A stretch of 64,000 bases of DNA from Blepharisma stoltei ATCC 30299 (GCA_965603825.1 CBFDEM010000025.1:434001-498000), one strand, 5' to 3'. Positions 1-61,462 are shown, numbered from the stretch's first letter. Notes: generated by a model from the sequence alone, not told the origin. Translations and numbers: made by a program.

Positions 1-625
1 GCTGCAGAAACGTGCACATGTGCAGATATCCATGCTTCTTTTGATGAAGCGTCTCTTAAATGTACCTGCAGCACAGGATTTTACTTAAATGACAAAGTCG
101 CTTGCACTGCATGTGCATGCCTGTGCTCTTCATGATCAAATTCAGCTACTTTTTGTACTGCTTGTGAAGATTCAACTCATATGACCTTTGACTCAGCTGC
201 AGGAACGTGCACGTGCTCTGATTTCAAGGCTTCTTTTGATGCTGCTACCCTTCTATGCACCTGCAATGCAGGATTTTTTCAAATAGCCAAAATACTTGCA
301 TTGCATGCACCACTCCATGCTCTTGATGCTCAAATTCAGCTACTTCTTGTACTGCCTGCGATGATTCAACCCATATGGCTTTCAGCTCGGCTGCAGGCAC
401 CTGTACATGTACTGATATCAATACTCCTTTTGATACTACAACTCTTCTATGTGCCTGCTGTGCTGGATTTTACTTAAATGACCAAGACACTTGCATTGCA
501 TGCATAAACCATGCTCTTCATGCAATTCAGCTACAGTTTGTAAGGGATGTATCGATGGCTGCTATTTAGATTCCACAACTTGTAAAGCTTGCACTAATCA
601 ATGCGCTAATTGCTCTTCAGCACAG
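1..625 (+). pseudogene. Frameshifted fragment of the 64-aa Cys-rich repeat ectodomain (type A) of the 55367-61462 gene; runs in from the window edge
   Basis: Encodes DSTHMTFDSAAGTCTC..GFYLNDQ..CTNQCANCSSAQ pieces in three frames, near-identical to the reverse complement of ~59490-60130; ends abruptly at a chimeric junction near 625. Confidence 0.85.
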
Positions 626-990
626 GTACTAGCAAACCAACAGTTTATGAAAATCAAAAAGATGATGAGCCTCAGAAAGATATTCCACTAAAATCAAATA
701 AAGCAAGCCCATTGGAAGCAGAATCCAGAAATGATGGAAAGTTTATAAAAGACAAAAGCATTATTCACCATAAAGATAAAAGAGAATGAAGGAATGACAT
801 ACAATCCGAAAAAGTTAGCAATAGCTCTACCCATAATGAAGATGAAAGAAATACTGTAAAGAAGCTAGAAAGGCGTTTAGCGTGTACAGACGGGCAAAAT
901 CATTGTCAGACATGTTCAGGTGATGACTGCACCCAATGCGACTCAACTGATTACGCATTAACATCGTCATCACCAGTAGTTTGCTCGCCT

Positions 991-2470
991 AAATGCACAG
1001 CTGGCTCAAACGGGTGCGCAACTTGCACAGATGACACTACTTGCGGGTCTTGCACTTCAGAAAGCGACGCAGTATCTTCAACTTCTCCAAACACTTGCTC
1101 CGCAAAATGTACAGCTGGCTCAAACGGCTGCGCAACTTGCTCAGATACTACTACTTGCGGGTCTTGCACTTCAAAATACGACGAAGTATCTTCAACTTCT
1201 CCAAACACTTGCTCAACTAAAAAATGCACAGCTGGCTCAAACGGCTGCGCAACTTGCACAGATGACACTACTTGCGCGTCTTGCACTTCAGAAAGCGACG
1301 CAGTATCTTCAGCATATCCAATTGCTTGCTTACCTAAATGCACAGTTGGCTCAAACGGCTGCGCAACTTGCCCAGATGACACTACTTGCGGGTCTTGCAC
1401 TTCAGAAAGCGACGCAGTATCTTCAACTTCTCCAAACACTTGCTCCGCAAAATGTACAGCTGGCTCAAACGGGTGCGCAACTTGCACAAATGACACTACT
1501 TGCGGGTCTTGCACTTCAGAAAGCGACGCAGTATCTTCAACTTCTCCAAACACTTGCTCCGCAAAATGTACAGTTGGCTCAAACGGGTGCGCAACTTGCA
1601 CAGATGACACTACTTGCGCGTCTTGCACTTCAGAAAGCGACGCAGTATCTTCAACTTCTCCAAACACTTGCTCCGCAAAATGTACAGTTGGCTCAAACGG
1701 GTGCGCAACTTGCACAGATGACACTACTTGCGGGTCTTGCACTTCAGAAAGCGACGCAGTATCTTCAACTTCTCCAAACACTTGCTCCGCAAAATGTACA
1801 GTTGGCTCAAACGGGTGCGCAACTTGCACAGATGACACTACTTGCGCGTCTTGCACTTCAGAAAGCGACGCAGTATCTTCAACTTCTCCAAACACTTGCT
1901 CTCCAAAATGCACAGATGGCTCAAACGGCTGTGAGACTTGCACAGATAGCACTACTTGCGGGTTTTGCACTTCAACAAGCGACGCAGTATCTTCAACATC
2001 TCCAAATTCTTGCTCACCTAAATGCACAAATGGATCAAACGGCTGTGCATATTGCTCAGATAGCACTATTTGTGTGTCTTGCCTTTCATGAACCGACGAA
2101 GTATCTACAGCATTTCCAAACACTTGCTTACCTAGATGCACAAATGGATCAAACGGCTGTGCATATTGCTCAGATAGCACTATTTGTGTGTCTTGCCTTT
2201 CATGAACCGACGAAGTATCTACAGCATCTCCAAACATTTGCTTACCTAGATGCACAGATGGCTCAAACGGCTGTGAGACTTGCACAGATAGCACTACTTG
2301 CGGGTTTTGCACTTCAGCAAGCGATGCAGTATCTTCAACATCTCCAAACACTTGCTTACCTAAATGCACAGAAGGCTTAAATGAGTGTACAGCTTGTTCA
2401 GATAGCACTACTTGTGGGTCTTGCTTATCAGCAGATTATGTAGTATTTGGAAACATTTGCATAGTAAAAT
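991..2470 (+). repeat. Coding tandem repeat, 114-bp unit (38 aa, repeat type D), about 13 copies
   Basis: Unit aaatgtacagttggctcaaacgggtgcgcaacttgcacagatgacactact... recurs every 114 nt (e.g. 1561, 1675, 1789). Confidence 0.95.
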
Positions 2471-2983
2471 GCACAGAAGATCAGAACAATTGTAAGATCT
2501 GCTCATCAGATGGCTCAAACGGTTGCGCATCATGTGCAAATGGATATGCTTTAATATCAGGTGCCTGCGTTGCCTGCGCAGACGTGGATAATTGTTTAAA
2601 TTGTGATGGGGATATATCTAAATGCGCTCTGTGCAAAGATCATTATGGTATAGTGTCAGGGGCATGCATCCAATGCGCAGATTCCACTAACTGCTTGATC
2701 TGTGATGGAGACAAAGATGCTTGCATGAGTTGCCGCTCTGGTTACCATATAATTAGTGGGGGCAAATGCGTCAAGGATTGCACAATTGGAGTTGATAACT
2801 GCGATGCATGCAGTAATATCTATACTTGTGAAAAATGCGCTGATGGGTATCGTATCGCATCAAGCGTATGTGAAAAGTGCACAGATACAAACTGCATTGA
2901 GTGTTCAGAGAACAAAGATATTTGCACTAAATGCAAGGGCCAACATTATTTGCATACTATTGGAGAATCCATAACTTGTGCCT

Positions 2984-2998
2984 GTAATTAATATTTAG
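2984..2998 (+). other. 15-nt spliceosomal intron (heterotrich type)
   Basis: GTAATTAATATTTAG, A at position 10; contains the only in-frame TAA of the reading frame; same position as the 15-mer 40807-40821 in the paralogue. Confidence 0.85.
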
Positions 2999-4399
2999 AT
3001 TGCAGCGTTGATTATAATAGCTATAACCCAAATACTGATACTTATTTATGTGGAAATCAAACTAAAAATACATGTGATACGTCGAAAGTTGGCTATAGTT
3101 TGGATTTCGATAACGGCGACATAATTATCAGTTTTGCATCAAATTTAGGTAAAATTTTGGAAAAGAAAAATTTCAGCATTAAACTCTCTGATGGGACTAA
3201 CTATTCTACAGAAAATTGCAGCTTGGCAATGGAAAGCATGATAAAATACACAATTCATACTGATTTAAGAGAATGTGATTTGCCTATTTTTATCGATCTG
3301 AAATTCAGCCTAATTTAGTTAATTACTTAGATAATAAAAATATATTCCAAAGAAAAATTAATTGATGGCAATGCTTAATTGGACTCAAAAATTTCCACCA
3401 AAATTATAAATTATTTATAGCTCTAAGATTTATCTCGCTTCTTCTGTGTTTATCTTAATATTGATCAATTTTATGCTCATTTATATAAGATCCTCAGCTT
3501 TTCAATCACTTTTTGTAAACAATAGTTTAGATTTTTATTGCGGTAATAAATTTATTGATTAATTTTTAAATAGAGTTTATTGGCATTTAAATTGCTACTT
3601 TCATTTGACTGTTTGACTGTGCACTCTTGGGCTCTTTTTTCAACTTTATTAATGCTGAAATAAGGATGGGTTTGTATGACCATATTTCTATGTGAGACCT
3701 AGAGCCTCTCTATGCTTAAGCACATATTGGGATACTCATAGAATTATAAAAGCTTTTAGCAAATTATATTATAATGATAGTGGATTTTCAGTGAGATTTT
3801 TATTTGCTAGCTCATCACTCCATCCTTGATCGAATCTATTGTCATTCTTCGATTAAGTATATATCTTATTATCTCCATACTTGACAATAAAATTATTCTT
3901 CTGTAGTGTTCTTTATAAGTTTGCTGCGAAATTAATCATAATTTTTCTTTCATAGAAATCAAGCTCAAGCCCAGCTGAAGAATTGTTGCGGTTTGAGCTG
4001 AATTTACCATATAATTATTTGTCAGTTTCACATAAATAAGAGCTTTATTATAAATATGCTGCATTGTGGAACTATAAACTCCTCAGAATTCCCAAAGTAT
4101 CTTTGTGCTTACGCCGAACCCGGAGTTTTACTTTGCAAACTTCATAATAATCAGCATTTCAATCTATGTTCAAGAAGCCCATATGAAATTAACTTCAAAT
4201 TATCAAAAAATATTTCAGCATTATCTAATACAATCAGAAATGGAAAGATTTACCAAATATTAAACTAAGTTTGGTAAAGAAATTGCTTCATTGATATTCA
4301 CATCTTTAAATATATAAAGTTATTGAATGCTTACATTCGAAAATTGAGAAAAGAAATAAAACAGCTCCTCATTTATCAGATATTTTAATTAAATATCAA

Positions 4400-7500: not shown

Positions 7501-7529
7501 AAAAAATCAAAAACACTTCGGTAACGACA

Positions 7530-8999: not shown

Positions 9000-10682
9000 G
9001 CACTGCGTACTCAGCAACCACATATAGGTCTATGATGCATCCTAATATGGATTTGCATTTAATTCCGGTTCAAAATCTTGTGTGTGTTCAATAACAAACT
9101 GTAAGGCTTGCTCAACAACTAATTATGGAACTTATTAAAGATTACCACGCTGCAATCTGGCAAATACTATCTGCAAGACATAATGATTTCTTATGATGTG
9201 GCTCTTTTCTTTTAATTGCATTACCTGTTCAGATAGCACAACGTGTTGCAATGTGATTCAGCAACAGTTTGTCATCAGGATCTTGAGTATGTACAGCTGG
9301 AAAGCACCATTGTGAGACTTACGTAGCTGGTAACTCAGATGGTTGCTCAAAATGTGACTCAGGAACGATACTGACATCAGGATCTTGCCCATGCACAGAT
9401 GGCCAGAATAATTGTAAGACTTGCGCAACTGATAACTCTAATGACTGCGCATCATGCGCTGATGGATATCAGTTGACGTCTGGATATTGCACTGTTGCAT
9501 GTGCAGTTGAAAATTGTAAAACGTGCTCAGGATCTAATTCACAAATTTGCGATACTTGTCAATCCGGGTTAGGCTGGGATTCTACTTCATCTAAATGCTT
9601 GTGCTCAATTGCTAATTGTGCAACCTGCTCAACAACTACATGTAGAAATTGCGATACATGCGTTTACTTTAAGACTCGATCAAATCTTGCGAGTGCTCAA
9701 TACGTGACTGCAAGACTTGCTCAACGGCATATATGGAATATGCCAAGAGTGTCAGTCTTGGCTTAGTTGGAATGCTACAACACCAAATTGCAAATGCTCA
9801 TTGGCTCACTGTGATACTTGCTCTACCATAGTTATGGAACTTGCAAAGCATGCACATCAACATTTGAAGGATCTGGAACATCAACTCGTGCCTGCTCATC
9901 TACCAGCTATTTAGATATAGACACCTGCAAATCATGCACTAATCAATGTTTATCTTGCACAACTGCAACAAAATGTACTAAATGCGTTGATAATGCATCT
10001 GGCATCTGAATTGATTAAGAATATGCTCGCTACCAGCAGCCCATATTCATTCACAGCAACTGCTTCTCAAGACAATAGTGGAACAACAGTTACTGGCAGT
10101 GCTACAGTTTCTATTGCAGTTGCATCTTCTCCTCTATATATTGAGTTGTCTAAGGCTATGCTTGGGCCTGAAATGTATTGAAGCTGATGGCTCAATCTTA
10201 CTAAGCAGCAGCGAAGCAAATAGCGCACTTACTATTCCTTCATGCGAAGAACAAATACTCAGCAAATGCTTCTGCAAGCACTGTCTCTACGTTTATATGG
10301 TCTCAAAAATCTGGTGATGGAATTGCATATGTATTCACTTTGAAGATTACAGACTTTGGCAGTGTAAGCTTAAGCGTTGACTTGTCTATCTCAGTTAACT
10401 TAGGAGCATCTTGTGAAGGAGCGTTCAGTGTGTCGCCAACAACTGGAATTGCTTTAACTGATGCTTTTACAATGTCAATAAGTGGGTGCGTTGATCGTGA
10501 TGATGAAGACTATCCACTTCTTTACACGTGCAGGTGCTCTCCATCTGGATCAAACTCGAAATACACTATAGAATCTACCACTGAAGAAAGCCAAATTTCA
10601 TCCAAACTGTCTTCAGGCGAGTAGGCTATTTTAGTCCATGTGTGCGATCAGCCTGATACTTGCGAAGATTACTCATCTTCTA
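9000..10682 (+). pseudogene. Multiply internally deleted, inverted copy of the polycystin-like pseudogene at 16700-19780
   Basis: Blocks colinear with the reverse complement of ~19780-16710 (CAVENCKTCSGSNSQIC; SPYSFTATASQDNSGTTV; GCVDRDDEDYPLLYTC), with large deletions at ~10000, ~10155, ~10243 and ~10313. Confidence 0.85.
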
Positions 10683-10734
10683 AGTGGATGGTTAAGCATG
10701 CGGTCTCAATAAAACTCACACTAGTCGATAAAAT

Positions 10735-11326
10735 TGCATTTAGGCGAGCAAACTACTGGTGATGACGATGTTAATGCGTAATCACTTGAGTCGCATTGGT
10801 TGCAATCATCACCTGAACATGTCTGATAATGATTCTGCCCATCTGTACACGCTAAATGCCTTTCGAGCTTCTTTACAGTATTTTTTTCATCTTCATTATG
10901 GGTAGAGCTATTGCTAACTTTTTCGGGTTGCATGCTATTCCTTCATTCTCTTTCATCTTTTTGATGAATAATGCTTTTGTCTTCTATAAACTTTCCATCA
11001 TTTCTGGATTCTGCTTCTTATAGGCTTGCTTTATTTGATTTTAGTGGAACATCTTTCTGAAGTTTACCATCTTTTTGATTTTCATAAACTGTTGGTTTGC
11101 TAAGTAAATCAGAAGAAGTTTCTCCTCTTATGGTTTCACTCGCTCCAGCATTGTTATCCTTTTGACGAGCAGTGCTTTCTTGGGCTGGATGATAGATACT
11201 TTTACGGCCTTCGTCGATTGAGCTAGAGTCAAAGTTTGAGTTTATTAAGTCTTTGGATGAATCTGAAGTACTTTTTCCATCAGCATGAATTAATAGAAGC
11301 AGAAGAAGAGACAAAAACTTTAACAT
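10735..11326 (-). pseudogene. Isolated 5' end (signal peptide, pro-region, RHL, first Cys repeat) matching the 630-3318 gene
   Basis: MLKFLSLLLLLLIHADG signal peptide; SKPTVYENQK..KKLERHLACTDGQNH..VVCSPKC highly similar to 630-997; one in-frame TAA at 11018-11020; truncated at ~10735. Confidence 0.85.
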
Positions 11327-11829
11327 TTTTATTATCAACTCGAAATTTAGCTCAAATATTTAATTGGTTTAAAATCTCATATAGCTCTTATATCTGCGTA
11401 GCGTGTCTCTGGAATATCGGATATAAAATCTGGATTTTGGCCTGCTAATACATTTTGAATAAGCCTTTAAATCTGCAGAGAGAGAAGCCATTAAGAGGGC
11501 ATTTGCTAAAAGTCTAGATTTTTGTGTTTATTTGCTTTGAGAGCATGCTAAATGCTTAACCATGGAGCCTAGGCTTGATAATACAAAATATAGAGATATT
11601 ACAGCATCATCAATCTGGAACTTCATTTATAAAAACTTAGAATTAAAAATTTATAATTTCAGAATATAGATAAATAAGCTCTAATAAGTATTAGACATTT
11701 AATTAATCCATTCCATTGATGACTACTAATTTTAGTATTAATTTTAAATATCTTTGAATAAAATTGCTCATTCATTGAAAACTTAGAAATGAAAAATTCT
11801 TTTCAAGTAAGAAAAATTGTTAAATTCAT

Positions 11830-13443
11830 ACTTTATTATTGTGCTCAATATTTATAACTTCTTAAAATTATTAAATTGTTTGATGAGTTTTTAGCACTTT
11901 TTAATTTTGGATAACTCACTATATCTATTCATTGTTCTTTTTCTTCTAGCGTTATCAATATCAATAAAAAATCTGAATTAACTTCAAAATATTTTGCTTA
12001 AAATTAAGTAAACTCTCTATCTTGCTCTAACTGTCTTTCTTGGCATGGTATCTCTAAAGTCTTTCATTAATATTTGTTATTTAAAAAGTGATTTTAATAA
12101 ACTATTTCTAGATAAAGCAATATATAAATAAATTCGTGTAAACATTTTCTTATTGAAGAACTATAAATTTTTGATCTTAAAAGATAAAGAAGCATTCAGC
12201 TAAGAATTTTAGAGACTAAATTATAGGTAGATATATAAAAGCATAATCTATCTATTAAATTCAAAGAAATACCTAAAACCCTCGAAAGCCGAACTAATTG
12301 ATGCACATCTTTGTCATGAATAAGTGTAAGGGAAAGTGCACTTGCATGCATATTCGGTTAATCCTTGCATTCTGAATTGAAATACAGCTTCATCTCCATT
12401 TCCTATTATTTATAAAGCATATTCGCATTCTATATTATTTAAGCTGAATAAATTATAGACATAGTTATTTAAATGTATATCAAAAGATATTTTTACCTTA
12501 TCTAAATGCCAAATAATTTCGGAAAAAGCCTTAAAATCTCAAAATAGCTATTAATATTCATTTAATTATTAATTTAATAATACTTCAAAACGTTGATATT
12601 GAAATAAGCTTCTATCACTTATAAAATATATTAGCCCGCATTTATGATAGAAAAGGTAATTTAAGCTTTAGATTTTTTCTCTTCAACTGGAGGAAAAACA
12701 TTTATGATGAAGTATCTTGCAATCATAGCAATTGTTTCCATGATGAAAACCTCAATGAAGGTCTCCCAAGAGAGCTTGCAGCCCAATATCCACTTATCTA
12801 AGCATATAATTTCAATAACGGAGCCAATAATAATAAAAACTCCTATAGATACTGCAGCTACTGAGCTTTTTGGAGCTTATTCCTGTCGATGCTAAAGGCA
12901 ACATCAATAAAGATTTAAATAGGCATTGCAATTGGCAAAGCGGCAATCATGTATCCAAACTATATAGCCTCATAACCATCAGAAAAGGTCTCAATTTCTA
13001 TTTCTGTTCTTGCACTAATATTTTCAGATCCAAAGAGCAGCAATCCTTCAAGCAGCAACTCAAAAATAATAATTACCACTAAGGTAAACAGCCTGATGAC
13101 TCTAGTAAAGGAAGGTCGATATATGATAAGCCCGAGAGCTAAATGATCTTCAAGCATCATGAAATGAATAAATTTGTAATAAAAATTAAATATAGCGATT
13201 TTTGATTATCTTGTGCTAAATTAGGGATTGAGACAAGCCTTTTAAAATTTTAATTCCATCCTACATGAGAAAAAGTCTTTTCTTGCCTTTGAATCCTGGT
13301 CAGAGGCGCAAAGACATTCATAATATATAAGCTTGCATTTAATCTACACCTAGAAAGGCCTAAGCTACCTACTAAATCGTAGGAGATTTATAATATAGAG
13401 TCCTGGAGCAAAGAGTGATATCTATTGGAACTTTGAATGTTAT
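11830..13443. repeat. Dispersed direct duplication, copy 1 (copy 2 at ~52440-53973)
   Basis: ctttattattgtgctcaatatttataactt.. through ..tctattggaactttgaatgttat is colinear with 52440-53973, with indels. Confidence 0.9.
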
Positions 13444-14275
13444 TGTAGCAAATACATATGATGGGCTGTATGCTGCTGATAAAACATCAGCAGGAGCCAA
13501 ATACTTTTACAGTTATACATTTATTTGTTATAGGATAGAGAGTACCCAGAATTGCAGACACAGCTTTTTGACGGTGAATCGTATGAAGAATTCGTTCTGA
13601 AAGTACAAGTAGTCCCAGCTAGCTCTTCATTTGTGACGCATACAGTGCAGTTTTGCCCTTTAGAAGCAGAGCAAGAAGAGCAAAGATCATTGCAGGCTGC
13701 TACACAATCGTTATTTGCTTTGAAAGAAAAGCCACTATTGCAAGAGCATCCCTTTTCACATATGCACTTTTTGCGAGTTGAACAGTCTTCAAGATCAGCA
13801 TTCTACGCAACTAGAGCATATTTGTGCTGAAGAGCAATTATCGCATTGATTAGTGCAAGCTTCACAAGTCGTGGAATCTAAATAGCAGCCATTGATGCAT
13901 CCCTTACAAATAGTAGCTGAATTGCATGAAGAGCATGGACTTATGCATTCAGTGCAAGCGTCTTGGTCATTTAAGTAAAATCCAGCATTGCAAGTACATT
14001 GAAGAGTTGTAGTATCAAAAGAAGTATTGGTATCAGTACATGCACAGGTGCCTGCAGCTGAGTCAAAAGTCATATGGACAGAATCCTCGCAGGCAGTACA
14101 AGAAGTAGCTAAATTTAAGCATGAAGAACATTTTGCAGTGCATATAGTGCAAGTATTTTGGCCATTTGAATAAAATCCTGTATTACAGATGCATAGAAGG
14201 GTAGAAGCCTTGGAACCAGATCACATGCACGTTCCTGCAGCTGAGTTAAAGGTCATATGAGTCGAATCTTCACAG
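12661..14275 (-). pseudogene. Chimeric, internally deleted polycystin-like pseudogene (type A Cys repeats joined to TM2-TM5; REJ and GPS missing)
   Basis: LEDHLALGLIIYRPSFTRVIRLFTLVVIIIFELLLEGLL at 12960-13160; 13420-14275 near-identical to 58985-59960. Confidence 0.85.
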
Positions 14276-48300: not shown

Positions 48301-48799
48301 AAAATTTCATATTTATCCATAGAATCTCCATTTAATTTCATTAGAAAATTTCATTAAAAAATTTCATTTTCGATAAAAAGATCCTCCAAATTTCCTTCAT
48401 TTGTTTTCTAATGGTGCTAATATTAAAAAGTAAGTTTTAAATTCTTTTAATCTTTAAATTTTTTGCTTATATTTTATTCTTTCAATTACCACTTATATTG
48501 AAAATAACGACGGCATCAGAAAATCTGACTCAACTATATAAAATTGATTTTAAATTTGTATAGATTTTTTGGATATGGAATTAATAATCTTTAATTGATT
48601 CCGGCAAAATCCCTATTAATTTATTTCAACAGAAATTAAATAGCAAGATTTGAACTATTCTATATCCACTTTAAATCAAAACAGCCTATATAAAATAATT
48701 ATTTTTTATTGATTTATATTAATGCTATTAAAACTCATAAGGATGAGATCATTATTTTCTAATAGACCATGGCAGAATTTACATTTCCAATACTTGCTA

Positions 48800-49560
48800 T
48801 TCTTCTCTGATATAAATATTCGCTACATTTTTATCAATATTTTCAATTTCCTTATTTTACTTGGCTTTGGCGAATATTTTATTTGCATTTCCATCTTAGC
48901 TTTTTTCATTAGCTTAAATTTTTTGTGTGTATTTTCTTATAATCGCTGTATCCTTCTTTATCTTCCGGAGTCCTTTCCTTAATGGATTATGCTTAACAAT
49001 ATTACACCAACATAATAATGTAACTCAGAGTCCTATAATCAATTTCTGCACCTCAAACTATTTTAAGTGATACAATTTACTGTTAATCGTTTTAAGATCG
49101 ATTTCGAATGCATTTTCATGTCCATATATGAAAATTTTTTTGAAAATCTTCAATTTTTCTATTAAATAAAATTTTTGATTGCTTAATGCTATTCCCATTT
49201 AATAATAATTTTGCTCTCTAGGATGAAAATAGCAAACTAGCTCAGATAAAGTATCAAAATTCTTCCAACTATATTTTTTAAATAAAATGCTCAGAGCGCT
49301 ATTTGGATCTCACTCATCTTAAAATCGTCAATTGTTCCAGATAAATTAATGTATAGTGATTTTATTTGAAAGACCCAAGAGAGCTTTCACTCTTCATAAT
49401 TTTTCTGAGCATTATTTCTGTGAGTTCTGGTCTTCCAATAAGTTTAAATTGGTGATCCATCGAAAATAGATATAAAGCAAGAAAGAAATTTTTCTCGCAT
49501 TCAAAAATTGCTTATCCAACTTGAATTTTCAATATATCTGAATGATAAGCTGCTAAAAAT
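48800..49560 (-). pseudogene. Degenerate paralogue of 44994-45962 (duplicate of 43700-44420)
   Basis: Reverse strand reads HQFKLIGRPELTEIMLRKIMKSE. Confidence 0.6.
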
Positions 49561-50150
49561 TTCTCTTAATTCATTATTTGAATTACTTAATAAGCTAATT
49601 TATTATTGCATTTTATTTGGAATTTATTAGACATTAAGTTTCTAGCATAATTTAAATAAGAACGATAGATTTTTTATATTATAATGCGAATAAGTTTAAG
49701 AATTAGTGCTTTATATACTATAAATATCCTTCAATTGATCTAAAAACTTGATTTGAAAATCAAATATTTAGAAGAATAGAAACAATTTAATAAAGATTAA
49801 CTTAGTCCAAATCATGAGAAATATTTTTTATGCAATCTCTTAAAAATTTATTAATAATTCAAGTACAAAAATTCAATAAAATATCAAATCAGATTTTAAA
49901 AGATTAATATTTCAAATTTGATGAACTCATAGACCTATTTGCTGTAAAAGCAAATGGCTGATAAAATCTAAATTTCATTATAATTAAATTCTTTAAGGAA
50001 AAAATTAAAATTTAACAAAATATAATCATCTCTTTGCTTATTTTCTTATTTCATGAATTTATTTGACACTAAAAATTAATATTATAAAATTTCTGATTTG
50101 TTAAAAAAAATAAAACATTTAATAAAAGTAAATTAATCATTATATTATAC

Positions 50151-51088
50151 CTAATATTTTGTAAAAAAATGATCAGGATCCAGGTCATTATAATCTATCA
50201 AACCATCACAGAATTTTTCTATCTTCGTAATATCAGGATCTTTATAAGTAGGATCTATATTATTTATAACGTTGCCAAGATCTTTATCAGTAGGTTCTAT
50301 ATTATTTATAAGATTCCCAAGATCTTTATCAGTAGAATCTATATCATTTATAAAATTGCCATCGTTTTCAATCTTCTTTTTTTTTTTACTTATCTTTTGA
50401 GTTTTTTCAGTTGATTTTATTTTTTTTGGATGTTTAGTATTTTCATTTTTAAGTTCTCTTCTTTTTCTCTTTTCAGAAGGCTTTAATATGACTATTTGCT
50501 CTCCTCTATCTGCATAAGGAACCGCAGTCAATAAAATAGTGTCAACATAATAGTTATAATCTAACGTGCAATAATCACTATTTTTATCTTTGACAACTTT
50601 CAGCATATTCAATTTTTCATTAATCATTTTCAAGTTAACTTTAAAATCACCCTCATATCTCGTCATCCATGATTGAAAATTTTCTTCAAAATTTTTCATC
50701 TTTAGATTTAAGTACATGCGCAAAGGTTCAATGCTATCTGAGTTGAAAAACTGTTTTGCCTTATATGCTGTACTAAGTTTTCTAAATAAATTGCCCATAG
50801 TGCAATCTCTAGCTCATTTAGCATAAGTTCATCAATAATTCCTGATAAGTTTATATATAAAGGTCTTGTTTGGAAGTCCTTTGGGATTTGATCACATTTT
50901 GTGATACGCCTAAGCATTCGCTCTGTTAATTCTGGCCTTCCTATCATCTTGAATTCCCTGTTTAAACGATAATAAACATTCAAGGAGCTTATTATACTGA
51001 TTTCTCCTTGTAGCCTTTCAATATCATGTGGCTCTTCACTTTCTGCTATAAGAATGCTACTGCTGCTTGAAAAACTCTTTAAGCTCAT
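50151..51088 (-). pseudogene. Duplicate of 44994-45962 frameshifted by a 43-bp deletion
   Basis: gctgTActaag at ~50767-50777 versus gctgTA-(41 nt)-TActaag at 45598-45651; the rest of the frame is intact. Confidence 0.85.
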
Positions 51089-53176
51089 TTTATTATTTTG
51101 AAACTCTTTCTTTTATGATCTGATAGATAATTGTTTAAAATGGAAAAACGGATTCGATCGGTATTTAAAGGTATTTGATATTTATCTAAGAATGAAAAAG
51201 AATGATATAAAATAGATATAGAGATAATAATTATCTGCTGATTGATATTAGAATGATGAATAAAGAACTGTAAATACTTTATAATAAGTTCTATAAATTC
51301 TAACAGGTATAATATTTGAAATTTTCACTTTTTGATCATTTATAAGCTTTTAGTGAGAGTATCTTTTCTTTTATTCATGATATTATTGACTCTTTCCCTT
51401 ATAAATAGACCATTCGTTACAAATTTCAAAATAAATCATTTATTAGAAATAAAAAAATGAAGGGTTAAATAATGCTCTTGCCAGTATTCTCAAGTATGTT
51501 TAATTCATGAAATTTTGGACTTAAACATCAATTCATAATGAAATATTAATGAGCCAATATAGTTTAATGATGTTTGCTTGCCAAAAATAATGTGCTGCAA
51601 AAATTTCTGATATTCAGAAATTTGTTGTTTTCATTTAATCGTTTATGGCAAAATTTGATATAAAAACTTATAATTTTATCAATATACATGCATTAGTATA
51701 TTTGATCTGCTTAATCAATTAAAGTAAAGACATCAGAATTACTTTCAGACTTACAAATTAGATAGCTTATAATTTAATTTGGATTTAATTTATATTGCAT
51801 TGTAAAATTTATATTGAACTATAAAAAAGTGATAGTTATTAAAAAATTCAAAAAATTTCTGAATAATCACTAAATTGATTTATCTCTTTAAAGCTTCCAT
51901 ATACACTACTGATAAAATCTAAATTTAAATTATAAATTCAAAAATTTGCTATACTGCATAATAGATGATTAGAATTTACTTTATAAAATTATACAACTTT
52001 AAACAGTCAAAAAACACTTGAAAATATGCAAAGGTTCTTTATCCTCTCTTAGAAAAAATACTTCAGACCGCCAACTTCAGTATCGTGTAAAAATTGCTTA
52101 CAAAAATAAGCATCAGAAAAACAAAGCAAACATTTTCTGGTTAGAAATTTGTTGACAAACTAAAATAAAATAAATCGTGTAAAATTCTTATAAGTCAAGA
52201 AATTTGGTAAACCAACATAGTTTAGTCATATATCGAATGCACCAAAATTAATTTAATTGACCATATTTTTTGGTTTAAAGTTATTTGCACTTTATTTCTT
52301 AAATTCTTCTCAAATCAATTATTTTGTGATGATGCTTCAGTAAGTGAAGCAGGTTTTCGCATGGAGATAAGCAAGGATTCTCTCTTAGAGGAATAAATAA
52401 ATCTATTTTTTGGACTAAATATAAGAGTAAATTCTCAAACTTTATTATTATGCTCAATATATATAACTTTTTAAAATTATTAAATTGTTTGATGAGGTTT
52501 TTATCGCTTTTTTAATTTTGGATAGCTCGCTATTTCAATTCATTGTTTCTTTTTCTTCTAGCGTTATCAATATCAATAAAAAATCTGAAATTTAACTTCA
52601 AAAATATTTTTTCTTAAAATTAAGTCGATTCTCTATCTTGCTCTAATTGTCTTTCTATGGCATGATATTTCCAAAGCCTTCTTTCATTGGTAGATATGGC
52701 TAAAAGCATAATCTATCTATTAAATTCAAAGAAATATCTAAAACCCTCGAAAATCGAAAAATTGATACAAATTTTGGTCATGAATAAGTATAAGGGAACT
52801 AACGTTTGCATGCATATACGATTAATCCTTGCATTCTGAGTTGAAATACTGCTTCATCTCCATTTCCTATTATTTATAAAACATATTCGCATTCTATATT
52901 ATTTAAGCTGAATAAATTATAGACAAGCTATTTAAATGTATATCAAAAGATATTTTTTAAAAATCAAAGCGCATACCTAATCTAAAAACCAAATAATTTT
53001 GAAAAAGAACCTTAAAACTCAAAATAGTTATTAAAATTTATTTAATTATCATTTTAGTTATATACTGCTAATACTTCAAAACGTTGATATTGAAATAAGC
53101 ATCCAAAATTTCAGATATTTCCTAAATTTAACGTATATAAAATATAATTAGCCAAATTTATGATAGAAAAGGTTAT

Positions 53177-54640
53177 TTAAGTTTTAGATTTTCTCTCATC
53201 ACTGGAGGAAAAAATTTATGATGAAGTATCTTGCAATCATTATAAATTGTTTCCAATACGAAAACCTCAATTAAGGTCCCCCAAGGAAGCTTGCAGCCCA
53301 ATATACACTTATCTAAGCATCAAAATTCCAATAATGGAACCAATAGTGATAAAAACTCCTATAGATACTACAGCTGCTGAGCATTGAAGAGCTTATCCCT
53401 GTCGGTGCTAAAGGCAACAACATTAAAGATTTCAATAGGCATTGCAATTACCAAAACGGCAATCATGCCTCCAAAGTATAAAGCCTCATAGTCATCAGAC
53501 AAGGTCTCAGTTGGTGTTTCAGTCCCTGCGCTAATATTTTCAGATCCAAAGTACAGCAATCCTTCAAGCAGTAAGTCAAAAATGATAATTATCACCAAGG
53601 TAAAGGTGACTTTACTAAAGGAAGGCCTATAGTCGATAAGTCCGAGAGCTAAATGTCCTTCAAGTATCCCGAATTGAATAAACTTGTAATAAAAAATAAA
53701 ATATAGGGATTTTTGATTATCTTGTCCTAAAATCACTCAAATTAGGGATTGAGACAAAGCCTTTTCAAAATTTTACTTCCATCCTACATAAGAAAGGCTT
53801 TTCTTGCCTTTGAATCCTGGTAATAGGCGCAAAGAAATTCATAAGATGCAAGCTTGCACTTAATCTGGACCTAGAATAGCCTAAGCTGCCTGTTAAATCT
53901 TAGGAGATTCATAAGACAGAGCCCTGGAGCAAAGAGGATCAACTGAGATATCTACTGGAACCTTAAAAGTTATATTCTTCTTTAAGAAGATTTATCCCAA
54001 AATTAGCATTTAGAGATTATTAAAAACACAAGCATAATTGCAATGCTCAATCAAATATTTCTCTATGTGCCAGGTATGGAAGAATTTTTTCTGGTTGATC
54101 ATAGTTACAGAGGTATATGATGCTATAAGCTGTGAAATCGCATCTGAAGGAGCTAGATATTTTCCAAACAACATATTTCCATTAGAAAATGTATAGCAGA
54201 GCTACAAAGACAGCTTTTTGTCGATGCATCATATGCTGCATGCACAAGCAACTCCATTTAACTCAGCCTCAGTCACGCATGCAGATCATTTATTACAATC
54301 ATTTGCATCACAAGAAGAGCAGAGGTTATCGCATATAGCTATTCATTACGCTCTACAAATACTTTTCGTATTATCCCAATAAAAGCTTGAATTGTATGGA
54401 TAGGTACCACTTCTAGTGTAGCATGGCTGTCTTTGTAAGCATCACACTTCGAACTGCCTGGACCCGTAAATTTCCCACAAGTTGCATCGCATTTGGACAA
54501 AAATAAGAAAAAGCATCCCAGTAATATCCTAAGTTCCACTTGCAGACGTCTCCTGATATAATCGCATGTGCTGTTTACAATTTGAGCAATTGGTTTGTCC
54601 TGAACAAAGTCCACAAGTTGTATCGAAGGCTACACATAAT
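53177..54640 (-). pseudogene. Internally deleted polycystin-like pseudogene (degenerate Cys repeats joined to TM2-TM5)
   Basis: ILEGHLALGLIDYRPSFSKV..IIIIFDLLLEGLLYFG at 53368-53700; CDATCGKFTGPGSSKCDA near 54450; shares its deletion junction with 12661-13420. Confidence 0.8.
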
Positions 54641-55366: not shown

Positions 55367-58300
55367 TTAAACTTTAGGCTTCACTGTAATAACTCTTGAA
55401 TAAGACTTTATGAGAAAGTATCTAACAATCATGAAAATGGTTTCAAAAATAAATACTTCAATTAAAATTCCCCAAAGGAAGCTAACTGCCCAGTACCCAC
55501 TCCACTTATGACAGAAATCAATACTCAGGATGATAATGCCTATAATTGATCCAATGAGTATAGCAATACCTAGAGCAATTGCGGATGCTGACCACTTTGA
55601 AATTTTAGCTCTGTCAATGCTAAAGGCAACTACCATGAAGATTTCAACTGGGACTGCAATGCTCAAAGCCAAGATCATGCAGCCAAAATATTTTCCTTCA
55701 TAGTCGTCAAACAATGTCTGAGTTGACTTTTCGCTTCCTGAGTCAGTGTCTTCAAAGCCGAAATACAATAAACCTTCTAGCAACAGCTCAAAGATGACAA
55801 CCACTACAAACGTGAATAGTCTTGCTAGTCTTGAAAATGATGGACAATGGTACAAAACTCCAAGGGCTAAGTGTCCTTCAATTAAAATTTGCAGATTGCG
55901 GTTGGCTTCTTTTTTAGGCACTTCTATTTCAGTCATTCCATCAACTTGCTCAGAAATTACAGTTCTGCTCAAGTCAACTTGTCTTGGCTTAGCAGTTTCG
56001 CCATCTAGCCTCGTCGGTTCTATGCTCTCAGCAGACTCTTCTTCTTGGAACGATTTTTCCTTTTCACTGTGTCTCGGAGATAATCTTGGTGTATGAGATG
56101 GAGAATTATTTAACACTTCCTTAGAAGTATCCACAAGTAATGAAGGAGGCTTATTTCTGTCAATTGCAACCATTACTGGAGCTAAAATCATGCCAATAAA
56201 CAAAATTACAGCAAGTATATAAATAGGAGCATAATTATCACCACAGCTTGAACTCGTATCCAGGTCATTTGGAGGTGGAATAATAGGATTTATTTCGGCT
56301 AGCTTGTACATTGAGAAGTGATACACTTTAAATTTAACTGTTTTAGCATCATAATTAACACTGACTATTTCGCAGTCTGATTCAGTCCATTTAAAGCTTG
56401 TCTCATTATAGTAAACACAACCCCATTTCGCTCCTTCTGAAATATTTTGGCTAAAAGGCAGCTCGATAATAAATGGGCTGTCTGGAGTTGAGAATGGGAC
56501 ATAAGATTCAGGCGACTGGCTGAGCACATAATTTTCATAAGTTCCTGACTGCCCGAAGCTAAAAATAGCAACACCTGACAAGTCATTGGTAAATCCATGG
56601 TAAAAACAAGCCCTCATATTCATAATATCTGTTGGAGAGTAGTCTAAAGACTCTGGATAGGTAAGGTTTCCGTACTTAGAATATTGACGTGTAGTATTTA
56701 GCATGCTGTTAGGGAAATTTCTATCATTATAAATCATGGTTTTTGCAGTGTTTTGGTCGCCGCTCATTGAGGATTGAGTAACTAAGTCTTCTGCTGTTGC
56801 AGCAATTGCCCAAGATGTATAGAAATTATTGATATAAAGGACATATTTTTCAAAGCTTTGGCTTGAGAAACTAGTACTGTTGCCATAGGTCAAATAGTTT
56901 TCACCAATTAACAAAATAATATTAATATTACTTTGGCTTGGTATCAAGGATGGGAAGGTCTTCAAAATGTTATTTAGCCAATCAATAAGCTCTTTATAGA
57001 TGTCAAAAGTCATCAATGAAGGCTGCTTCGTCAATGAATAAGCTGCACCTAGCACGTTTTGCAAAAGGGTGGTTGTCATAGTACTTATGCTGGTGACATA
57101 AGATTTTAAATCACTCCACATAGTGGTAGACAATGAACTATCAATTGTAGCACTATTGCAAAATGAAATAATAGTAGAGGGGATGTTGTCTGGATCCAGA
57201 ATCATTGATGAATAAGCCGTTCTTAATCTTTCAGAGTCCAAAAGTCTGCTTGTATATGCAGTGACTGCAATAGCTTTACTATATGTATAATCTGCACAGG
57301 TATGGAGCTGATCACATACATGCACTGAAATGTAGTTGTTGCCTTGAGGCAAGATATATGATACTTGAGTTTTCTCTGTGGTTGGCCCAATATTGAATTT
57401 TTCACTGCCATTATTTGAGTATTTAAAGGTGTACAAAAGTGGATAATCTTCGCCGTCACGGTCATAGCAATTAGATATTGATATGGCAAAGCTGGTGGTT
57501 AAAGCAGTTCCAAAATCAGGGGAAACAGAAGGCTGCGAGTCTAAACATGCTGCGCCTAAGTTAGAGCTGATAGATACACTTGTCTTACAGCTCACACTTG
57601 CAGATGTAACAGTTAAAGTAAATACATATGCCATACCTTCAGCTAGAGAACCAGCAGAAAGCGAAAGAGCTGAAAGGTTATTTGGCTCAATTTTCACATT
57701 AGATCCAGAAGACTGAGACCAAATAGTAGAAGCCCCAGAGTCCGCTGAGACAAGAGCTGAGTATTGATTTTTTGCTTGGCCGTTTACCTTTAAGAAGATC
57801 GTCGGAATTTCGACTGAGATATTTGCCTGAATATTTAAAATATTGAGCGTTATTGTATAGCTTGCTGTTCTAGTATCCTTAGAGACCGTACAAGTTAAAT
57901 CCCACTTCACTCCTTTCGTCAGTTTTTCTTTAGAAATAGTCAAGCTCTTATCCTTTTGTCCAGAAAGGAATGAAGCCACTGAGCAGTCCGTCCCATCTAT
58001 ATGATTGCTGCAAGTCCACTTATACCCAAGAGGAACCTTTGAATCAGGATCATCCGGGTCTTTAGACCCATTTGCGTTAACAGTAAAGTCCTTATTTCCA
58101 TTAATATCCCCGCTGCCCGTGGATAATTGAATGAAAAGAGGTGACGAAGCCACTGTAATAGAAATACTAGCACTCCCCATAACTAGAGCTCCAGCATTAT
58201 TTTGAGTAGCAGTTGCAGTAAATACATATGGACCGCCTGGAGACAACAAGTTACTTGAAATTGATAACTTTTGTGTATTGGAGCTAGAAGCAAGATTAGA

Positions 58301-61300
58301 CGCTGCAGCACTGACTGGCCCCGATGTATAAGACCATTTTCAAGAAATTGTACTTGTGGATCCTCCACAGACAGCTGTAACCCAAGCTTTCACGTTTCTA
58401 GAGTTTGAGGCTTTCATTGAAATGGTATCTCCTGAGTCAAAAGAAACAGTCAGCACCTCTTGAGGAGAAATAGTAGTTGTCTGAGATGCAGAATCTGTTA
58501 GGCCAAAGACATTTGTAACTTGAACAGTCACTGTCAATGAGGAACTTATACTGGATTTATCAATTGAAATAGAAGATCCTGACTGTGCGTCTAAAAATGT
58601 TTTTAAGCTTGAAATTGTTGAGCTTCATTTATATCTCAAAATAGAACCATAACTCCCAGTTGACTTGCCAGCTGAGTAAACAAGTGGGTCATTATTGCAG
58701 CTAAGGGAGACTGAATCTGGTCCTGATAGCTTGGCAACTGGGCTTGGAGTTGTGGGCATAGAAATACTTATGCTTAGCGGCTGATAATTATTGGTACAGT
58801 CATCTTGTGAATTTTTAACAATTCATGTGCCATCTAGATTTATTGTGGAGCTTCTAAGGCTAAATCCACTTCCCAAAATAATTTTAAGAGTCTTAGAATC
58901 TGACCAAGAGCATAGTGGGTTGCTTCCCATCAATTGAAGAGTGTCATAAGTCAAAACCTTGTTGCAGGAAGAATCTATTGTGGTATCTATTGGGACTTTG
59001 AATGATATTGTAACAAATGCGTATGATGGGCTGTATGCTGCTGATAAAACATCAGCAGGAGCCAAATACTTTTTACAGGATATACATTTGTTATAGGATA
59101 AAGAGTACCCAGAATTGCAGACACAGCTTTTTGATGCTGAATCATATGAAGAATTCGCTGTGCAGGCACAAGTAGAACCAGTTAGCTCTGCATTTGTGAT
59201 GCATGCAGTGCAGTTTTGCCCATTAGAAATAGAACAAGAAGTGCAAAGATCATTGCAGGTTGCTACACAATCGTTATTTGTATTTAAAGAAAAGCCACTA
59301 TTGCAAGAGCATATTCCATTTGACCCTTTTGCAGCATTATTTTTGCAAGTTAAACAATTTGTTAAAGAGTCGCAGGTTACACAAGAAGCCGGACATAGGG
59401 AGCACGCCCCATTATCTGGTGCATATCCACTTTTACATATGCATTTTTTCGTGCTAGAGTCCAAATCAGCATTTATAACGCAACTAGAGCATATCTGTGC
59501 TGAAGAGCAATTATCGCATTGGTTAGTGCAAGCTTTACAAGTTGTGGAATCTAAATAGTAGCCATCGATACACCCCTTACAAGCTGTAGCTGAATTGCAT
59601 GAAGAGCATGGGCTTATGCATGCTGCACAAGTGTCTTGGTCATTTAAGTAAAATCCAGTATTGCAGGCACATAGAAGAGCTGTAGTATCAAAAGAAGTAT
59701 TGGTATCAGTACATGTGCAGGTACCTGCATTTGAGTCAAAAGTCATATGGGTTGAATCCTCGCAAGCAGTACAAGAAGTAGCTGAATTTAAGCATGAAGA
59801 GCATGGTGCGATGCATGCAGTGCAAGTATTTTGGTCATTTGAATAAAATCCTGTATTACACGTGCATAGAAGGGTAGCAGTATCAAAAGAAGCATTGGAA
59901 TCAGAGCATGTGCACGTTCCTGCAGCTGAGTCAAAGGTCATATGAGTTGAATCTTCACAAGCAGTACAAAAAGTAGCTGAATTGCATGAAGAGCACGGAC
60001 TTGTACATGCAGTGCAAGCGCCTTGGTCATTTAAGTAAAATCCTGTGCTGCAGGTACATTTAAGAGACGCTTCATCAAAAGAAGCATTGGAATCAGAGCA
60101 CGTGCATGCTCCTGCAGCTGAGTCAAAAGTCATATGAGTTGAATCTTCACAGGCAGTACAAAAGGCAGCTGAATTGCATGAAGAGCATGGCGCTGTGCAT
60201 GCAGTGCAGGTGTCTTGATCATTTAAGTAAAATCCTGTGCTGCAGGTACATTTAAGAGACGCTTCATCAAAAGAAGCATGACTATCTGTGCATATGCATG
60301 TCCCTGCAGCTGAGTCAAAAGTCATATGAGTTGAATCTTCACAGGCAGTACAAAAAGTAGCTGAATTCGAGCACGAAGAGCATGGCGCGGTGCATGCTGC
60401 ACAAGTGTCTTGGTCATTTAAGTAAAAACCTGTGCTGCAGGTACATTTAAGAGACGCTGCATCAAAAGAAGCATGGCTATCTGCACATATGCATGTTCCT
60501 GCAGCTGAGTCAAAAGTCATATGGCTTGCATCTTCACAGGCAGTACAAAAGGCAGCTGAATTGCATGAAGAACATGGCGCTGTGCATGCAGTACAAGTGT
60601 CTTGGTCATTTAAGTAAAATCCTGTATTGCAAACACATTTAAGAGTCGTAGTATCAAAAGAAGCCTTGACATCAGTACATGTACATGTTCCTGCTGCTGA
60701 ATCATACGTCATATGGGTTTCATCTTGACATGTAGTACAAAAAGTAGCTGAATTACATGAAGAGCATGGAGCTGTGCATGCAGTACAAACTTCTTGGTCA
60801 TTTAAGAAAAATCCTGCATTACAGACACATTTAAGAGATGCGGTATCAAAAGAAGCATTGGTATCAGTGCATGTGCATGCTTTTGTGCCTGCATCATAAG
60901 TCATATGAGTAGAATCGTCGCATTCATCACAATCTGTAGCTACCGTGGAGCATGTAGAGCAGGGATGTTGACAATCAGCACAATCTCCTGTATCTATCTG
61001 GTACTTTCCAGGGTCACATGCTGATGGATCCAAGCGTCTTTCTGATTCGTTGATATTATTTTTATAAGAAGCTACTTGATTAAAATTTTGAGCTATTTCA
61101 AAGTCTTTTTCCTCTGAATTTCTCCTATTATTTTTATTTTGTCCATCCTTGCTATAAATGATGCTATTTTTCTGGGTATGTCTATCATCACCTTTACTTT
61201 CTATTTTTGCAGAATTTTCCATGTTGTCATTATTTGTAGCATCTTCAATCAGATTCTGGGTGGCTTTGGAAGTAATCTCATCGCCAATATCGCCTAATTT

Positions 61301-61462
61301 CATCTCATTTTCATTAACTTCGCCACCTCCTTGGATCATGGATCTTAAAGTATTTTCATATAGGTCAAATTGAGGGTCTTTTATCATGATATTTTCCTCA
61401 CGCCCGTCACTATAAAGTAGCTGAAAGGCAATAAGAGGTATAAACATGAAAAAGTTGGCCAT
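55367..61462 (-). CDS. Polycystin-1-like / REJ-GPS adhesion receptor (~2031 aa): signal peptide, pro-region, RRL, seven 64-aa type A Cys repeats, further furin-like repeats, REJ, GAIN/GPS, 5 TM
   Basis: Track ORFs 58823-61474, 58340-58537 and 55367-58249 share one frame joined by TGA codons (58823, 58625, 58340); the last two align with W in paralogues (YTWK, ISWKWSY). I translated the gaps and found no TAA/TAG. GPS WGCVYY..WTESDC..KVYHFSMY; PKD1-like H..LG..Y..PSFSRLARL before TM2. ATG 61462 chosen from the conserved gggtaataaaATG context. Confidence 0.92.
59600..60950 (-). repeat. Coding tandem repeat type A, ~192-bp unit (64 aa), 7 copies
   Basis: Seven GF(F/Y)(L/S)NDQ and THMT(F/Y)D occurrences. 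Confidence 0.95.

Follow-up and report, generated by a model that had tools for sequence, protein, structure and literature searches.

The window analysed here, 64,000 nucleotides in length, corresponds to positions 434001-498000 of MAC contig 25 of Blepharisma stoltei ATCC 30299. When UGA was read as Trp, long ORFs appeared at the coordinates of Table 1, whereas the standard code interrupts those ORFs, and the introns of the genes in the window were 15 nt in length; both observations bear out the sequence-only reading of this DNA, which had assigned it to a heterotrich ciliate that reads UGA as Trp and has very short introns. Eleven genes or pieces of one family are present, about nine of them broken and just two, A (55367-61462) and Bsol (37785-41117), intact; gene-by-gene translation agreed with the earlier count of about ten pieces, two of them intact. 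The common grammar that had been noticed, i.e. signal peptide, acidic pro-region, RRL, Cys-rich array and C-terminal module, is real, and the repeat periods differ among the four repeat types (64, 47, 44 and 38 aa). The window probably represents the decaying core of a cluster of about 200 kb located near one end of the contig. Genome-wide counts given below cover the MAC assembly of 41.46 Mb in 64 contigs.

Table 1. Family members and other features found in the window
Feature	Position	Strand	Description
Type A pseudo-fragment	1..628	+	Remnant (3' part) of a defunct copy of the gene A 5' half; type A repeats and frameshifts
Dsol	630..3318	+	D-type pro-region, ERRL, 38-aa type D repeats, proximal Cys-rich region, intron 2984-2998, soluble beta-sandwich tail
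Soluble-tail fragment with TAA stops	3844..4035	-	64-78% aa identity to Bsol tail; 2-3 TAA codons inside
WD40 pseudogene pieces	5282-6816	+	WD40 E 2.3e-16; ORFs divided over frames
cNMP-binding channel pseudogene piece	7392-8241	-	Weak cNMP_binding match; ORFs divided over frames
Inverted partial copy of psi3	9215..10750	+	Cys-rich piece and REJ pieces
Separate D-type head	10721..11359	-	Signal peptide, pro-region, ERHL, first repeat
A-like copy, internally deleted	12685..14274	-	Type A repeats and proximal region joined to TM-tail piece
psi3, decayed full-length receptor pseudogene	14826..20446	-	C/G1 type, own Cys-rich set
Non-LTR retrotransposon (LINE) fragment	22349..23972	+	Exo_endo_phos_2 E 8.3e-8; RVT_1 E 2.9e-4
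Gene C	25648..35925	-	Head, type B array, type C array, REJ-GAIN-5TM
Bsol, intact	37785..41117	+	Signal peptide, pro-region, ERRL, type B repeats, proximal Cys-rich module, intron, soluble tail
5.5-kb tandem segmental duplication	41062-46427 and 46520-51561 (41062..51561)	.	82.8-86.4% nt identity
TM-tail fragment and Cys-rich remnant	53182..54342	-	41-44% aa identity to A and C tails
Gene A, intact	55367..61462	-	Signal peptide, pro-region, ERRL, type A repeats, REJ, GAIN, 5 TM

Gene A is a single open frame of 2032 codons (2032 aa), in which a signal peptide, an acidic pro-region and ERRL are followed by 64-aa type A repeats, REJ, GAIN with YHF/SMY and TM1-TM5, a disordered loop of about 108 aa separating TM1 from TM2-TM5. 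The REJ domain (PF02010) was found with E 3.6e-33 in A and 6.6e-27 in C. An AF2 model of the receptor tail (pLDDT 79.7) gave a beta REJ domain, a helical and beta GAIN domain (helical subdomain A at 369-514, beta subdomain B at 523-682) and five TM helices with TM1 at 704, and the best Foldseek matches were GAIN domains, namely those of BAI3 (E 3e-9), BAI2 and CELSR1. The Pfam GPS model had no match on the receptor tails; the GPS site V-x-H-x-S-x-F is kept in the family alignment directly before TM1. The REJ match, the GAIN fold, the H-x-S motif and the five TM helices together confirm the REJ-GPS-5TM tail that had been proposed. Judging from the motif and the fold, the receptors may cleave themselves at the GPS, at H-F/S here as against H-L/T. 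The propeptide would be removed at R-x-L, and the proteins may serve as surface receptors or in adhesion.

The receptors had also been called polycystin-1-like, and this likeness is confined to REJ and GAIN. Like Polycystin-1, PKDREJ and suREJ (PKD1 family), they have a big ectodomain followed by REJ and by GAIN/GPS right before TM1, then a long first cytoplasmic loop and four further helices. Unlike that family, they have no PLAT, TM6-11, PKD repeats, LRR or C-type lectin, and the ectodomain is an array of Cys-rich repeats. No Pfam match to PLAT was obtained in the TM1-TM2 loop, whose residues 730-812 have pLDDT of about 30 and no predicted structure, and the TRP-like channel half (TM6-11) is absent, the protein stopping 6 residues past the predicted TM5. 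The 5-TM part has no sequence similarity to the solved PC1, and a profile search matched no PC1 or PC2 chain.

The A-like copies are broken in various ways. The fragment at 1-628, which begins outside the window (C25:432840), is 89.7% identical in nucleotides to 59492-60118 of gene A; its translation requires three reading frames, and its upstream head is 73-87% identical to A in amino acids and contains stops. The internally deleted copy has amino acid identities of 82% to A 502-662, 77% to A 718-792 and 55% to A 1859-1956, its repeats and proximal region occupying 13384-14274 and its TM-tail 12685-13160, with the REJ-GAIN part absent. This copy belongs to a segmental duplication with 52428-53973, in which 52686-53973, containing most of the fragment 53182-54342, is 81.9% identical in nucleotides to 12223-13443.

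Gene C has its head at 35925-35473, a type C array with a 132-nt unit at 30624-32074, and 1784 open codons on the 3' side; its tail shares 77% identity with that of receptor G1 (9337 aa) and 84% with a B. japonicum transcript. At least four frameshifts and two in-frame TAA/TAG stops, none of them introns, interrupt the 5' 5 kb of the gene: a deletion or frameshift at about 35460 eliminates the RRL site, a frameshift lies at about 34330, stops occupy 34138-34140 and 33418-33420, and one frameshift is present in three copies between 30890 and 31940. The pseudogene psi3 is 68-81% identical to C in amino acids across several frames, with many TAA/TAG stops, and its inverted partial copy matches it at 89.8% (9215-9997 with 19710-18918) and 91.4% (10314-10683 with 17077-16708) of nucleotides. 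The separate D-type head has an in-frame stop at 11018-11020, ends abruptly at about 10735 and is 54% identical to the G1 head in amino acids; its part 11102-10735 is 93.2% identical to Dsol 630-997 in nucleotides.

It appears extremely improbable that the frameshifts and unusual junctions arose through misassembly of repetitive DNA: the lesions of C do fall in tandem arrays with 4% indels between units, but an assembler would not be expected to produce in-frame TAA/TAG codons, inverted junctions located in unique sequence or copies that differ by 7-24%, and the B. stoltei genome paper describes a HiFi-based, telomere-capped assembly. The window also contains DNA of other origins (Table 1), including a LINE fragment of a type whose MAC copies are unexpressed or truncated according to the same paper. 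A 328-codon ORF in the tandem duplication, for which a Pfam search gave no match, is uninterrupted in copy 1 and disrupted in copy 2.

The soluble gene Bsol is open after removal of a 15-nt intron (40690-40704) and encodes 1105 aa with 47-aa type B repeats. It is arranged head-to-head with C and resembles the 5' part of C, the heads being 68% identical in amino acids and the repeats about 80% in nucleotides; a genome-wide search found type B repeats nowhere beyond these two genes. Against 68% with the C head, the Bsol head shares 33% identity with the Dsol head, while the Bsol tail is 82% identical to that of the soluble gene C60sol as compared with 47% to that of Dsol. Dsol has an open frame of 897 codons whose pro-region begins with SKPTVYENQ, and a 15-nt intron homologous to that of Bsol; because of its fusion at 628/630 to the type A pseudo-fragment, it has neither ATG nor signal peptide. 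Over its 5' 1.8 kb it runs collinear with the beginning of G1, at 83-90% nucleotide identity. Both C and Dsol retain very long open frames with no usable start; plain decay does not fully account for this, which counts against the explanation preferred below.

The soluble tail is predicted to be a beta-sandwich of about 100 residues. Depending on the query, 25-46 genomic copies were found; it is C-terminal in all copies translated and is under purifying selection (omega 0.14). No similarity was detected between the soluble tail and any of the receptor parts. Most soluble-tail genes have no receptor nearby, and the C23 soluble-tail genes do not share their heads with the C23 receptor.

Secreted members have repeatedly acquired the 5' portion of a nearby gene for a membrane receptor. 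Head and repeats are shared in three receptor/soluble pairs: Bsol with C, Dsol with G1, and C60sol with C60R3220. The two C60 genes are 93-100% identical over CDS nt 0-1900, including stretches of 285 and 205 nt without a difference, but in the 300 bp upstream their identity falls to 55-77%. AU tests, in which the groups were defined after the pairwise identities had been seen, rejected head/tail congruence for the soluble genes (p 9.4e-15 for heads and 2.4e-5 for tails). The dS values were 0.12 and 0.23 for the heads, which are short and of low complexity, as against 0.62 or saturation for the tails, and the heads are therefore younger than the tails. Among the receptor genes, head and tail relationships agree, giving (C,G1) and (A,G2) in both cases. 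The sequence-only reading had proposed reassortment of modules by recombination, with incongruence of module trees as the check; the proposal stands for the soluble genes, through the AU tests and the younger heads, and not for the receptors.

The congruence of the receptor genes is what would be expected from plain birth-and-death with no module exchange, in which repeat types and head similarity come from divergence and within-gene homogenisation; arrays are indeed homogenised within genes, and decay makes up most of the window. We nevertheless regard this explanation as improbable, basing our view on the strong head/tail tree conflict, which already contradicts it for the soluble genes, on dS values placing the heads at 3-5 times younger than the tails, and on the long identical tracts of the C60 pair that adjoin diverged upstream DNA.

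The window is probably best explained by birth-and-death evolution in which 5' partial duplication and gene conversion recurred. The cluster encodes a heterotrich family of giant secretory-pathway proteins, each with a signal peptide, an acidic propeptide extending to the conserved R-x-L and a Cys-rich array homogenised within the gene, and each finished by one of two endings: a receptor ending made up of REJ, GAIN/GPS (an autoproteolysis domain) and a membrane anchor of five helices, or a secreted ending consisting of the unanchored beta-sandwich. Germline changes would include segmental duplication, often inverted, deletion, and unequal crossing-over inside the arrays. At least three times, 5' partial duplication or gene conversion would have brought a receptor head and repeats to a neighbouring soluble-tail gene; for the C60 genes, about 300 bp lying upstream would have moved as well. 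Most products would decay afterwards, leaving the pseudogene field of the window.

A receptor and its secreted twin might also work as a matched pair, the soluble protein being ligand or decoy for the receptor; the ectodomain common to both would then be kept matched by selection via gene conversion. We think this unlikely: although there are three independent pairs in two loci, the C60 partners are both intact with homogenised coding sequence and diverged upstream DNA, and the part shared by receptor/soluble pairs is under purifying selection (omega 0.35), in each pair of the window one gene is dead, C through its broken 5' part and Dsol for want of a start, the majority of receptors lack a twin, and the majority of soluble-tail genes carry different heads.

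In Euplotes raikovi, a pheromone is accompanied by a membrane-bound isoform acting as receptor. Autocrine binding of this pheromone has been described (PMC2116191). The pairs found here are similar in that the extracellular part of a membrane protein recurs in a secreted protein of the same ciliate; they differ in that the Euplotes proteins are small and come from one gene by alternative splicing, whereas here separate genes are kept alike by duplication/conversion. One might further speculate, with little expectation of being right, that the twins form a matched self-recognition or pheromone-like pair in which the secreted form binds or competes at the REJ-GAIN receptor. If so, conversion would keep twins matched while pairs diverge, giving private ligand-receptor specificities in heterotrichs, which could act in Blepharisma mating-pair formation.

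The fragments had been suggested to serve as donors, and a surface-variation or recognition system with silent cassettes supplying expressed genes, comparable to trypanosome VSG or the assembly of Tetrahymena mating-type genes, must be considered. Many truncated cassettes do lie beside intact genes, recombination between paralogues has clearly occurred, and 16 of the 24 family loci are within 100 kb of a contig end as compared with about 31% of the genome. The duplicate pairs in the window, however, are 76-93% identical in nucleotides, most of them 76-90% and the best 93.2%, so that no near-identical conversion tract between a fragment and a gene was found in the window, and the fragments are full of stops and frameshifts and interspersed with unrelated pseudogenes (WD40, cNMP channel) and a LINE EN/RT remnant; the idea of donors is not supported for these fragments. 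In addition, the sequence is that of the already rearranged MAC, the receptor heads and tails are congruent, and orthologues of A and C are transcribed in B. japonicum with 87% (A) and 84% (C) identity, indicating that A and C are stable genes. Such a system is therefore highly improbable here. The locus seems to have evolved slowly in the germline; nothing in it points to programmed variation, and its origin is probably germline, not programmed.

Some known protist systems resemble this family in part. Giardia VSPs and the surface antigens of Paramecium and Tetrahymena are likewise encoded by multigene families whose paralogues recombine, and their ectodomains are also periodic and CXXC-rich; the Giardia VSP model (PF03302) gave 16-25 bits, below the Pfam cut-off of 31.4, and the family ends in the REJ-GAIN-5TM anchor or the beta-sandwich, unlike the single TM with CRGKA tail or the GPI signal. 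The Tetrahymena MTA/MTB locus, whose proteins have furin-like Cys repeats and C-terminal TM bundles, is similar in architecture only, with head-to-head pairs, Cys repeats, TM bundles and incomplete copies in an array (PMC7786109). There, incomplete pairs in the MIC are resolved to one in the MAC (PMC7786109), whereas here the fragments are in the MAC, diverged and with stops.

The preferred reading, birth-and-death with 5' duplication and conversion, concerns a family that extends beyond the window: at least 21 receptor loci were found in the genome, with ORFs of up to 9337 aa, and B. japonicum transcripts and Stentor contain homologues. In Tetrahymena, more than eight GAIN-domain proteins (Arac et al. 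2012, PMC3321182) and expansions of a REJ-domain family (PMC11834939) have been reported, so that the same ancient domains are found in growing ciliate gene families on both sides. The Tetrahymena reports consist of domain annotation only, whereas the heterotrich genes are distinguished by lengths of up to 9337 aa, the signal peptide-propeptide-RxL grammar and the secreted twins.

Long ORFs appear in the window only with UGA read as Trp (for example 2039, 1784, 972 and 793 codons); the genome paper of B. stoltei reports UGA=Trp, 15/16-nt introns and 25,711 genes for the MAC. UGA-containing and spliced proteins were assembled locally, database searches took stop-free pieces and not joined models, and the genome searched comprised 41.46 Mb in 64 contigs. 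Contig 25 measures 534,257 bp, and the distance of the window from its end is 36-100 kb. The sequence-only reading had described a mix-and-match locus of polycystin-1-like receptors and soluble counterparts among silent fragments; its observation is confirmed, its description correct and its interpretation partly supported. At the mean density of the genome, one gene per 1.6 kb, the 64 kb would be expected to hold about 40 genes; we find two intact family genes. For a ciliate MAC, pseudogenes extending over more than 60 kb are unusual.

The features are collected in the table below. The intact receptor-type gene A consists of a signal peptide, an acidic pro-region to ERRL, 64-aa type A repeats, REJ (Pfam E 3.6e-33), a GPS-like YHF/SMY and hydrophobic helices, and the soluble-tail gene Bsol carries 47-aa type B repeats and a non-hydrophobic tail at its end. 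In the other soluble-tail gene, Dsol, a dead copy of the A 5' half stands in place of the signal peptide and the first ~77 residues. Receptor copy C shows in its 5' 5 kb an RRL-removing deletion or frameshift, a second frameshift and two in-frame stops, and in its type C array (132-nt unit) one frameshift copied three times. We considered tiny introns at these breaks, but the only 15-mers of GTA..TAG form found there belong to coding 'CKACTA' repeats, and the breaks are therefore real lesions.

Features of the locus and of related places (window coordinates unless prefixed C25 or C60, for contigs 25 and 60)
Feature	Position	Strand	Remarks
Dead 5'-half copy of A	C25:432840 to window 628		start outside window; joined to Dsol
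Dsol	630-3318	plus	38-aa type D repeats; homologous intron 2984-2998; Bsol-kind tail
Smaller family pieces	3844-4035, 9215-10750, 10721-11359, 12685-14274, 53182-54342
psi3 (receptor-type)	14826-20446		thoroughly decayed
C	25648-35925	minus	1784 open codons at 3' end; 5' 5 kb broken
Bsol	37785-41117	plus	open 1105-aa frame once 15-nt intron GTAATAACTAATTAG (40690-40704) is spliced out
Gene A	55367-61462	minus	single open frame, 2032 aa; intact
R-x-L motif sites	61010-61025, 38300-38330, 880-900		also in G1, G2 and C60 genes
Unrelated debris among family pieces			WD40 and cNMP-channel pseudogene pieces, LINE-like EN/RT fragment, 5.5-kb tandem duplication
Direct repeat 1	20721-21212 vs 23954-24445		86.7%
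Direct repeat 2	21976-22392 vs 24718-25131		78.9%
Tandem duplication, 5.5 kb	41062-51561		328-codon ORF 44994-45980, minus; second copy 50151-51112 split
Receptor G1	C25:327623-355636		open frame 9337 aa
Receptor G2	C25:508074-525146		open frame ~5690 aa
REJ-start pieces	C25:424992-425509		upstream of window
TM-tail pieces	C25:427927-428265, C25:431359-431858		upstream of window; 85-89% identical to A
Dead A head	C25:432840-433299		upstream of window
C60sol (soluble)	C60:623706-626573		15-nt intron site before tail as in Dsol and Bsol

The stop-free last 990 residues of A were aligned with 18 homologues and modelled (mean pLDDT 79.7). Beta-rich REJ modules (residues 1-360) are followed by seven helices (369-514) and a beta sandwich (523-682), which is the GAIN pattern, and then by TM1 (704-728), a disordered loop (730-812) and four further long helices to residue 984. 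The best Foldseek matches are the GAIN domains of BAI3 (E 3e-9), BAI2 and CELSR1, and the family consensus keeps V-x-H-x-S-x-F at the putative cleavage position. The name 'polycystin-1-like' holds for REJ, GAIN and the first 5-TM block but not for the remaining defining features, because the A tail lacks both PLAT and a second channel-like half, and a profile search of PDB sequences recovered no polycystin, its sole match being a weak one to an adhesion-GPCR GAIN domain (E 0.0037). Compared with polycystin-1, the ciliate family is a cut-down 'half polycystin-1' form. To our knowledge, the roles of REJ and GAIN, both ancient, are almost unknown outside animals; here they are part of giant receptors of a ciliate, the longest with 9337 residues. 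These proteins are a variant of known REJ/GAIN kinds, which have been recorded in ciliates at the annotation level (PMC3321182, PMC11834939); the supplement of the genome paper does not mention REJ or PKD.

The receptor tail has 49 genomic match places, about 21 of them full-length, and 307 cluster representatives among public proteins match it, including annotated B. stoltei proteins, Stentor coeruleus, unnamed metagenomic eukaryotes and B. japonicum transcripts. As the B. japonicum transcripts share 87% identity with A and 84% with C, both copies date back at least to the divergence of the two species, and the sister species expresses them. Sixteen of 24 receptor-family loci lie less than 100 kb from a contig end, against ~31% of the genome, with clustering making these counts non-independent; several decayed copies lie 18-35 kb from an end (C38:18-21 kb, C35:745-748 kb). 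G1 consists mostly of 38-aa type D repeats, and on its antisense strand the repeat composition yields, as a by-product, an open frame of 7702 codons, a possible trap for gene prediction. In all complete family members examined, the first Cys is preceded at a distance of 2-7 residues by an R-x-L motif (ERRL, ERHL, ERYL, TRSL, KRLL, ARRL and others), and pro-regions outside it are less than 35% identical. Apicomplexans have RRL/RxL export-processing sites (TEXEL/PEXEL), which the motif may recall by analogy.

Bsol and Dsol end in a separate module of ~100 residues, found at 25-46 genomic places, depending on query and threshold, and located at the extreme C-terminus in the copies translated. It is modelled as a small beta sandwich; fold search gave just generic Ig-like sandwiches (Z <=6.4), Pfam no match and the ESM Atlas no usable one. 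A truncated receptor stalk was considered and rejected, as the tail HMM finds nothing in seven receptor proteins. The tail is under purifying selection between Bsol and its closest relative (omega 0.14). On contig 50 (C50:484001-494000) three soluble-tail genes have other heads, one with a large non-Cys-rich N-terminal region, and one of the three tails is cut short; the differing heads make the tail a promiscuous C-terminal module. At the intron site shared with Dsol and Bsol, the C60sol candidate GTAATAGCTATTTAG has no in-frame stop and the ORF reads through, so that its removal is not decidable from sequence alone. When the last 209 residues of Bsol before the intron were searched against other species, with length limits that exclude full-length proteins, only generic Cys-rich matches were obtained.

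Reassortment of modules, as claimed in the sequence-only reading, is found among the soluble genes and not among the receptor genes. Receptor tails pair as C with G1 (77%) and A with G2 (62%), and the heads pair likewise (C 5' end with G1 41%, A with G2 32%). The Bsol head, on the other hand, is 68% identical to that of C and 33% to that of Dsol, whereas its tail is 82% identical to that of C60sol and 47% to that of Dsol. Over its 5' 1.8 kb, Dsol runs collinear with the beginning of G1 (83-90% nucleotide identity), and the first 2.1 kb of C60sol is common to a 3220-aa receptor 14 kb off. The head tree rejects a single origin of the three soluble heads (AU p 9.4e-15); in the tail tree Bsol joins C60sol (support 99/98), and a Bsol+Dsol grouping is rejected (p 2.4e-5). 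Synonymous divergence (dS) is 0.12 for the contig 60 pair and 0.23 for Dsol/G1, and for tails 0.62 for Bsol/C60sol and saturated for Bsol/Dsol. Type B repeats are confined to Bsol and C.

That secreted-tail genes have repeatedly acquired the 5' end of a receptor gene is thus statistically well supported, and this transfer would have operated on top of birth-and-death. The fusion of the dead A head with Dsol at 628/630 looks like a fourth, failed transfer. The paired genes of contig 60 share 93-100% of their CDS, two stretches of 285 and 205 nt being without any difference, but the 300 bp upstream is just 55-77% identical, a pattern that points to gene conversion following an older duplication. 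Universal receptor/secreted pairing is rejected because the soluble-tail genes of contig 23 and the receptor there are alike only at the generic 25% level of Cys repeats. In each receptor/secreted pair of the window, one member is disabled.

The silent fragments had also been proposed as possible recombination donors of a variation system, and we found nothing that needs one. Against donor cassettes, no duplicate pair in the window is above 95% identity (range 76-93%), the pieces carry stops and alternate with dead genes of other kinds and the remnant of a retrotransposon, and the sequence is an already processed somatic genome. Birth-and-death of a heterotrich family of REJ-GAIN-5TM receptors is the best reading of the locus.

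Transfer of a receptor front end onto a secreted-protein gene is one way by which an organism whose introns are tiny could come to have the same ectodomain in two versions, membrane-bound and secreted, each encoded by its own gene. A precedent for a function of such twins is the pheromone of Euplotes with its membrane isoform. In Blepharisma the secreted twins may have a part in pair formation, and the intact contig 60 pair and gene A are concrete targets for work on localisation, cleavage and binding, including a possible role in conjugation.

An out-of-frame type C repeat of gene C (30940-31002, minus strand) reads 'MELLIVVQLVIQLVLLAQD', a signal-peptide look-alike leading directly into the intact 1764-codon remainder, and the frameshifted unit holding it is present three times (30890-31940). 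It could be a fortuitous new start of C, which might account for the 3' ORF staying open. The 328-codon ORF of the tandem duplication has no Pfam match. The pseudogene field extends upstream of the window (C25:424900-434000). A single inversion restoring gene D was rejected: its halves have 368 nt in common (93% identical), and the structure is therefore an inverted duplication. The LINE-like EN/RT fragment (22349-23972) is flanked by direct repeats within 20721-25131.
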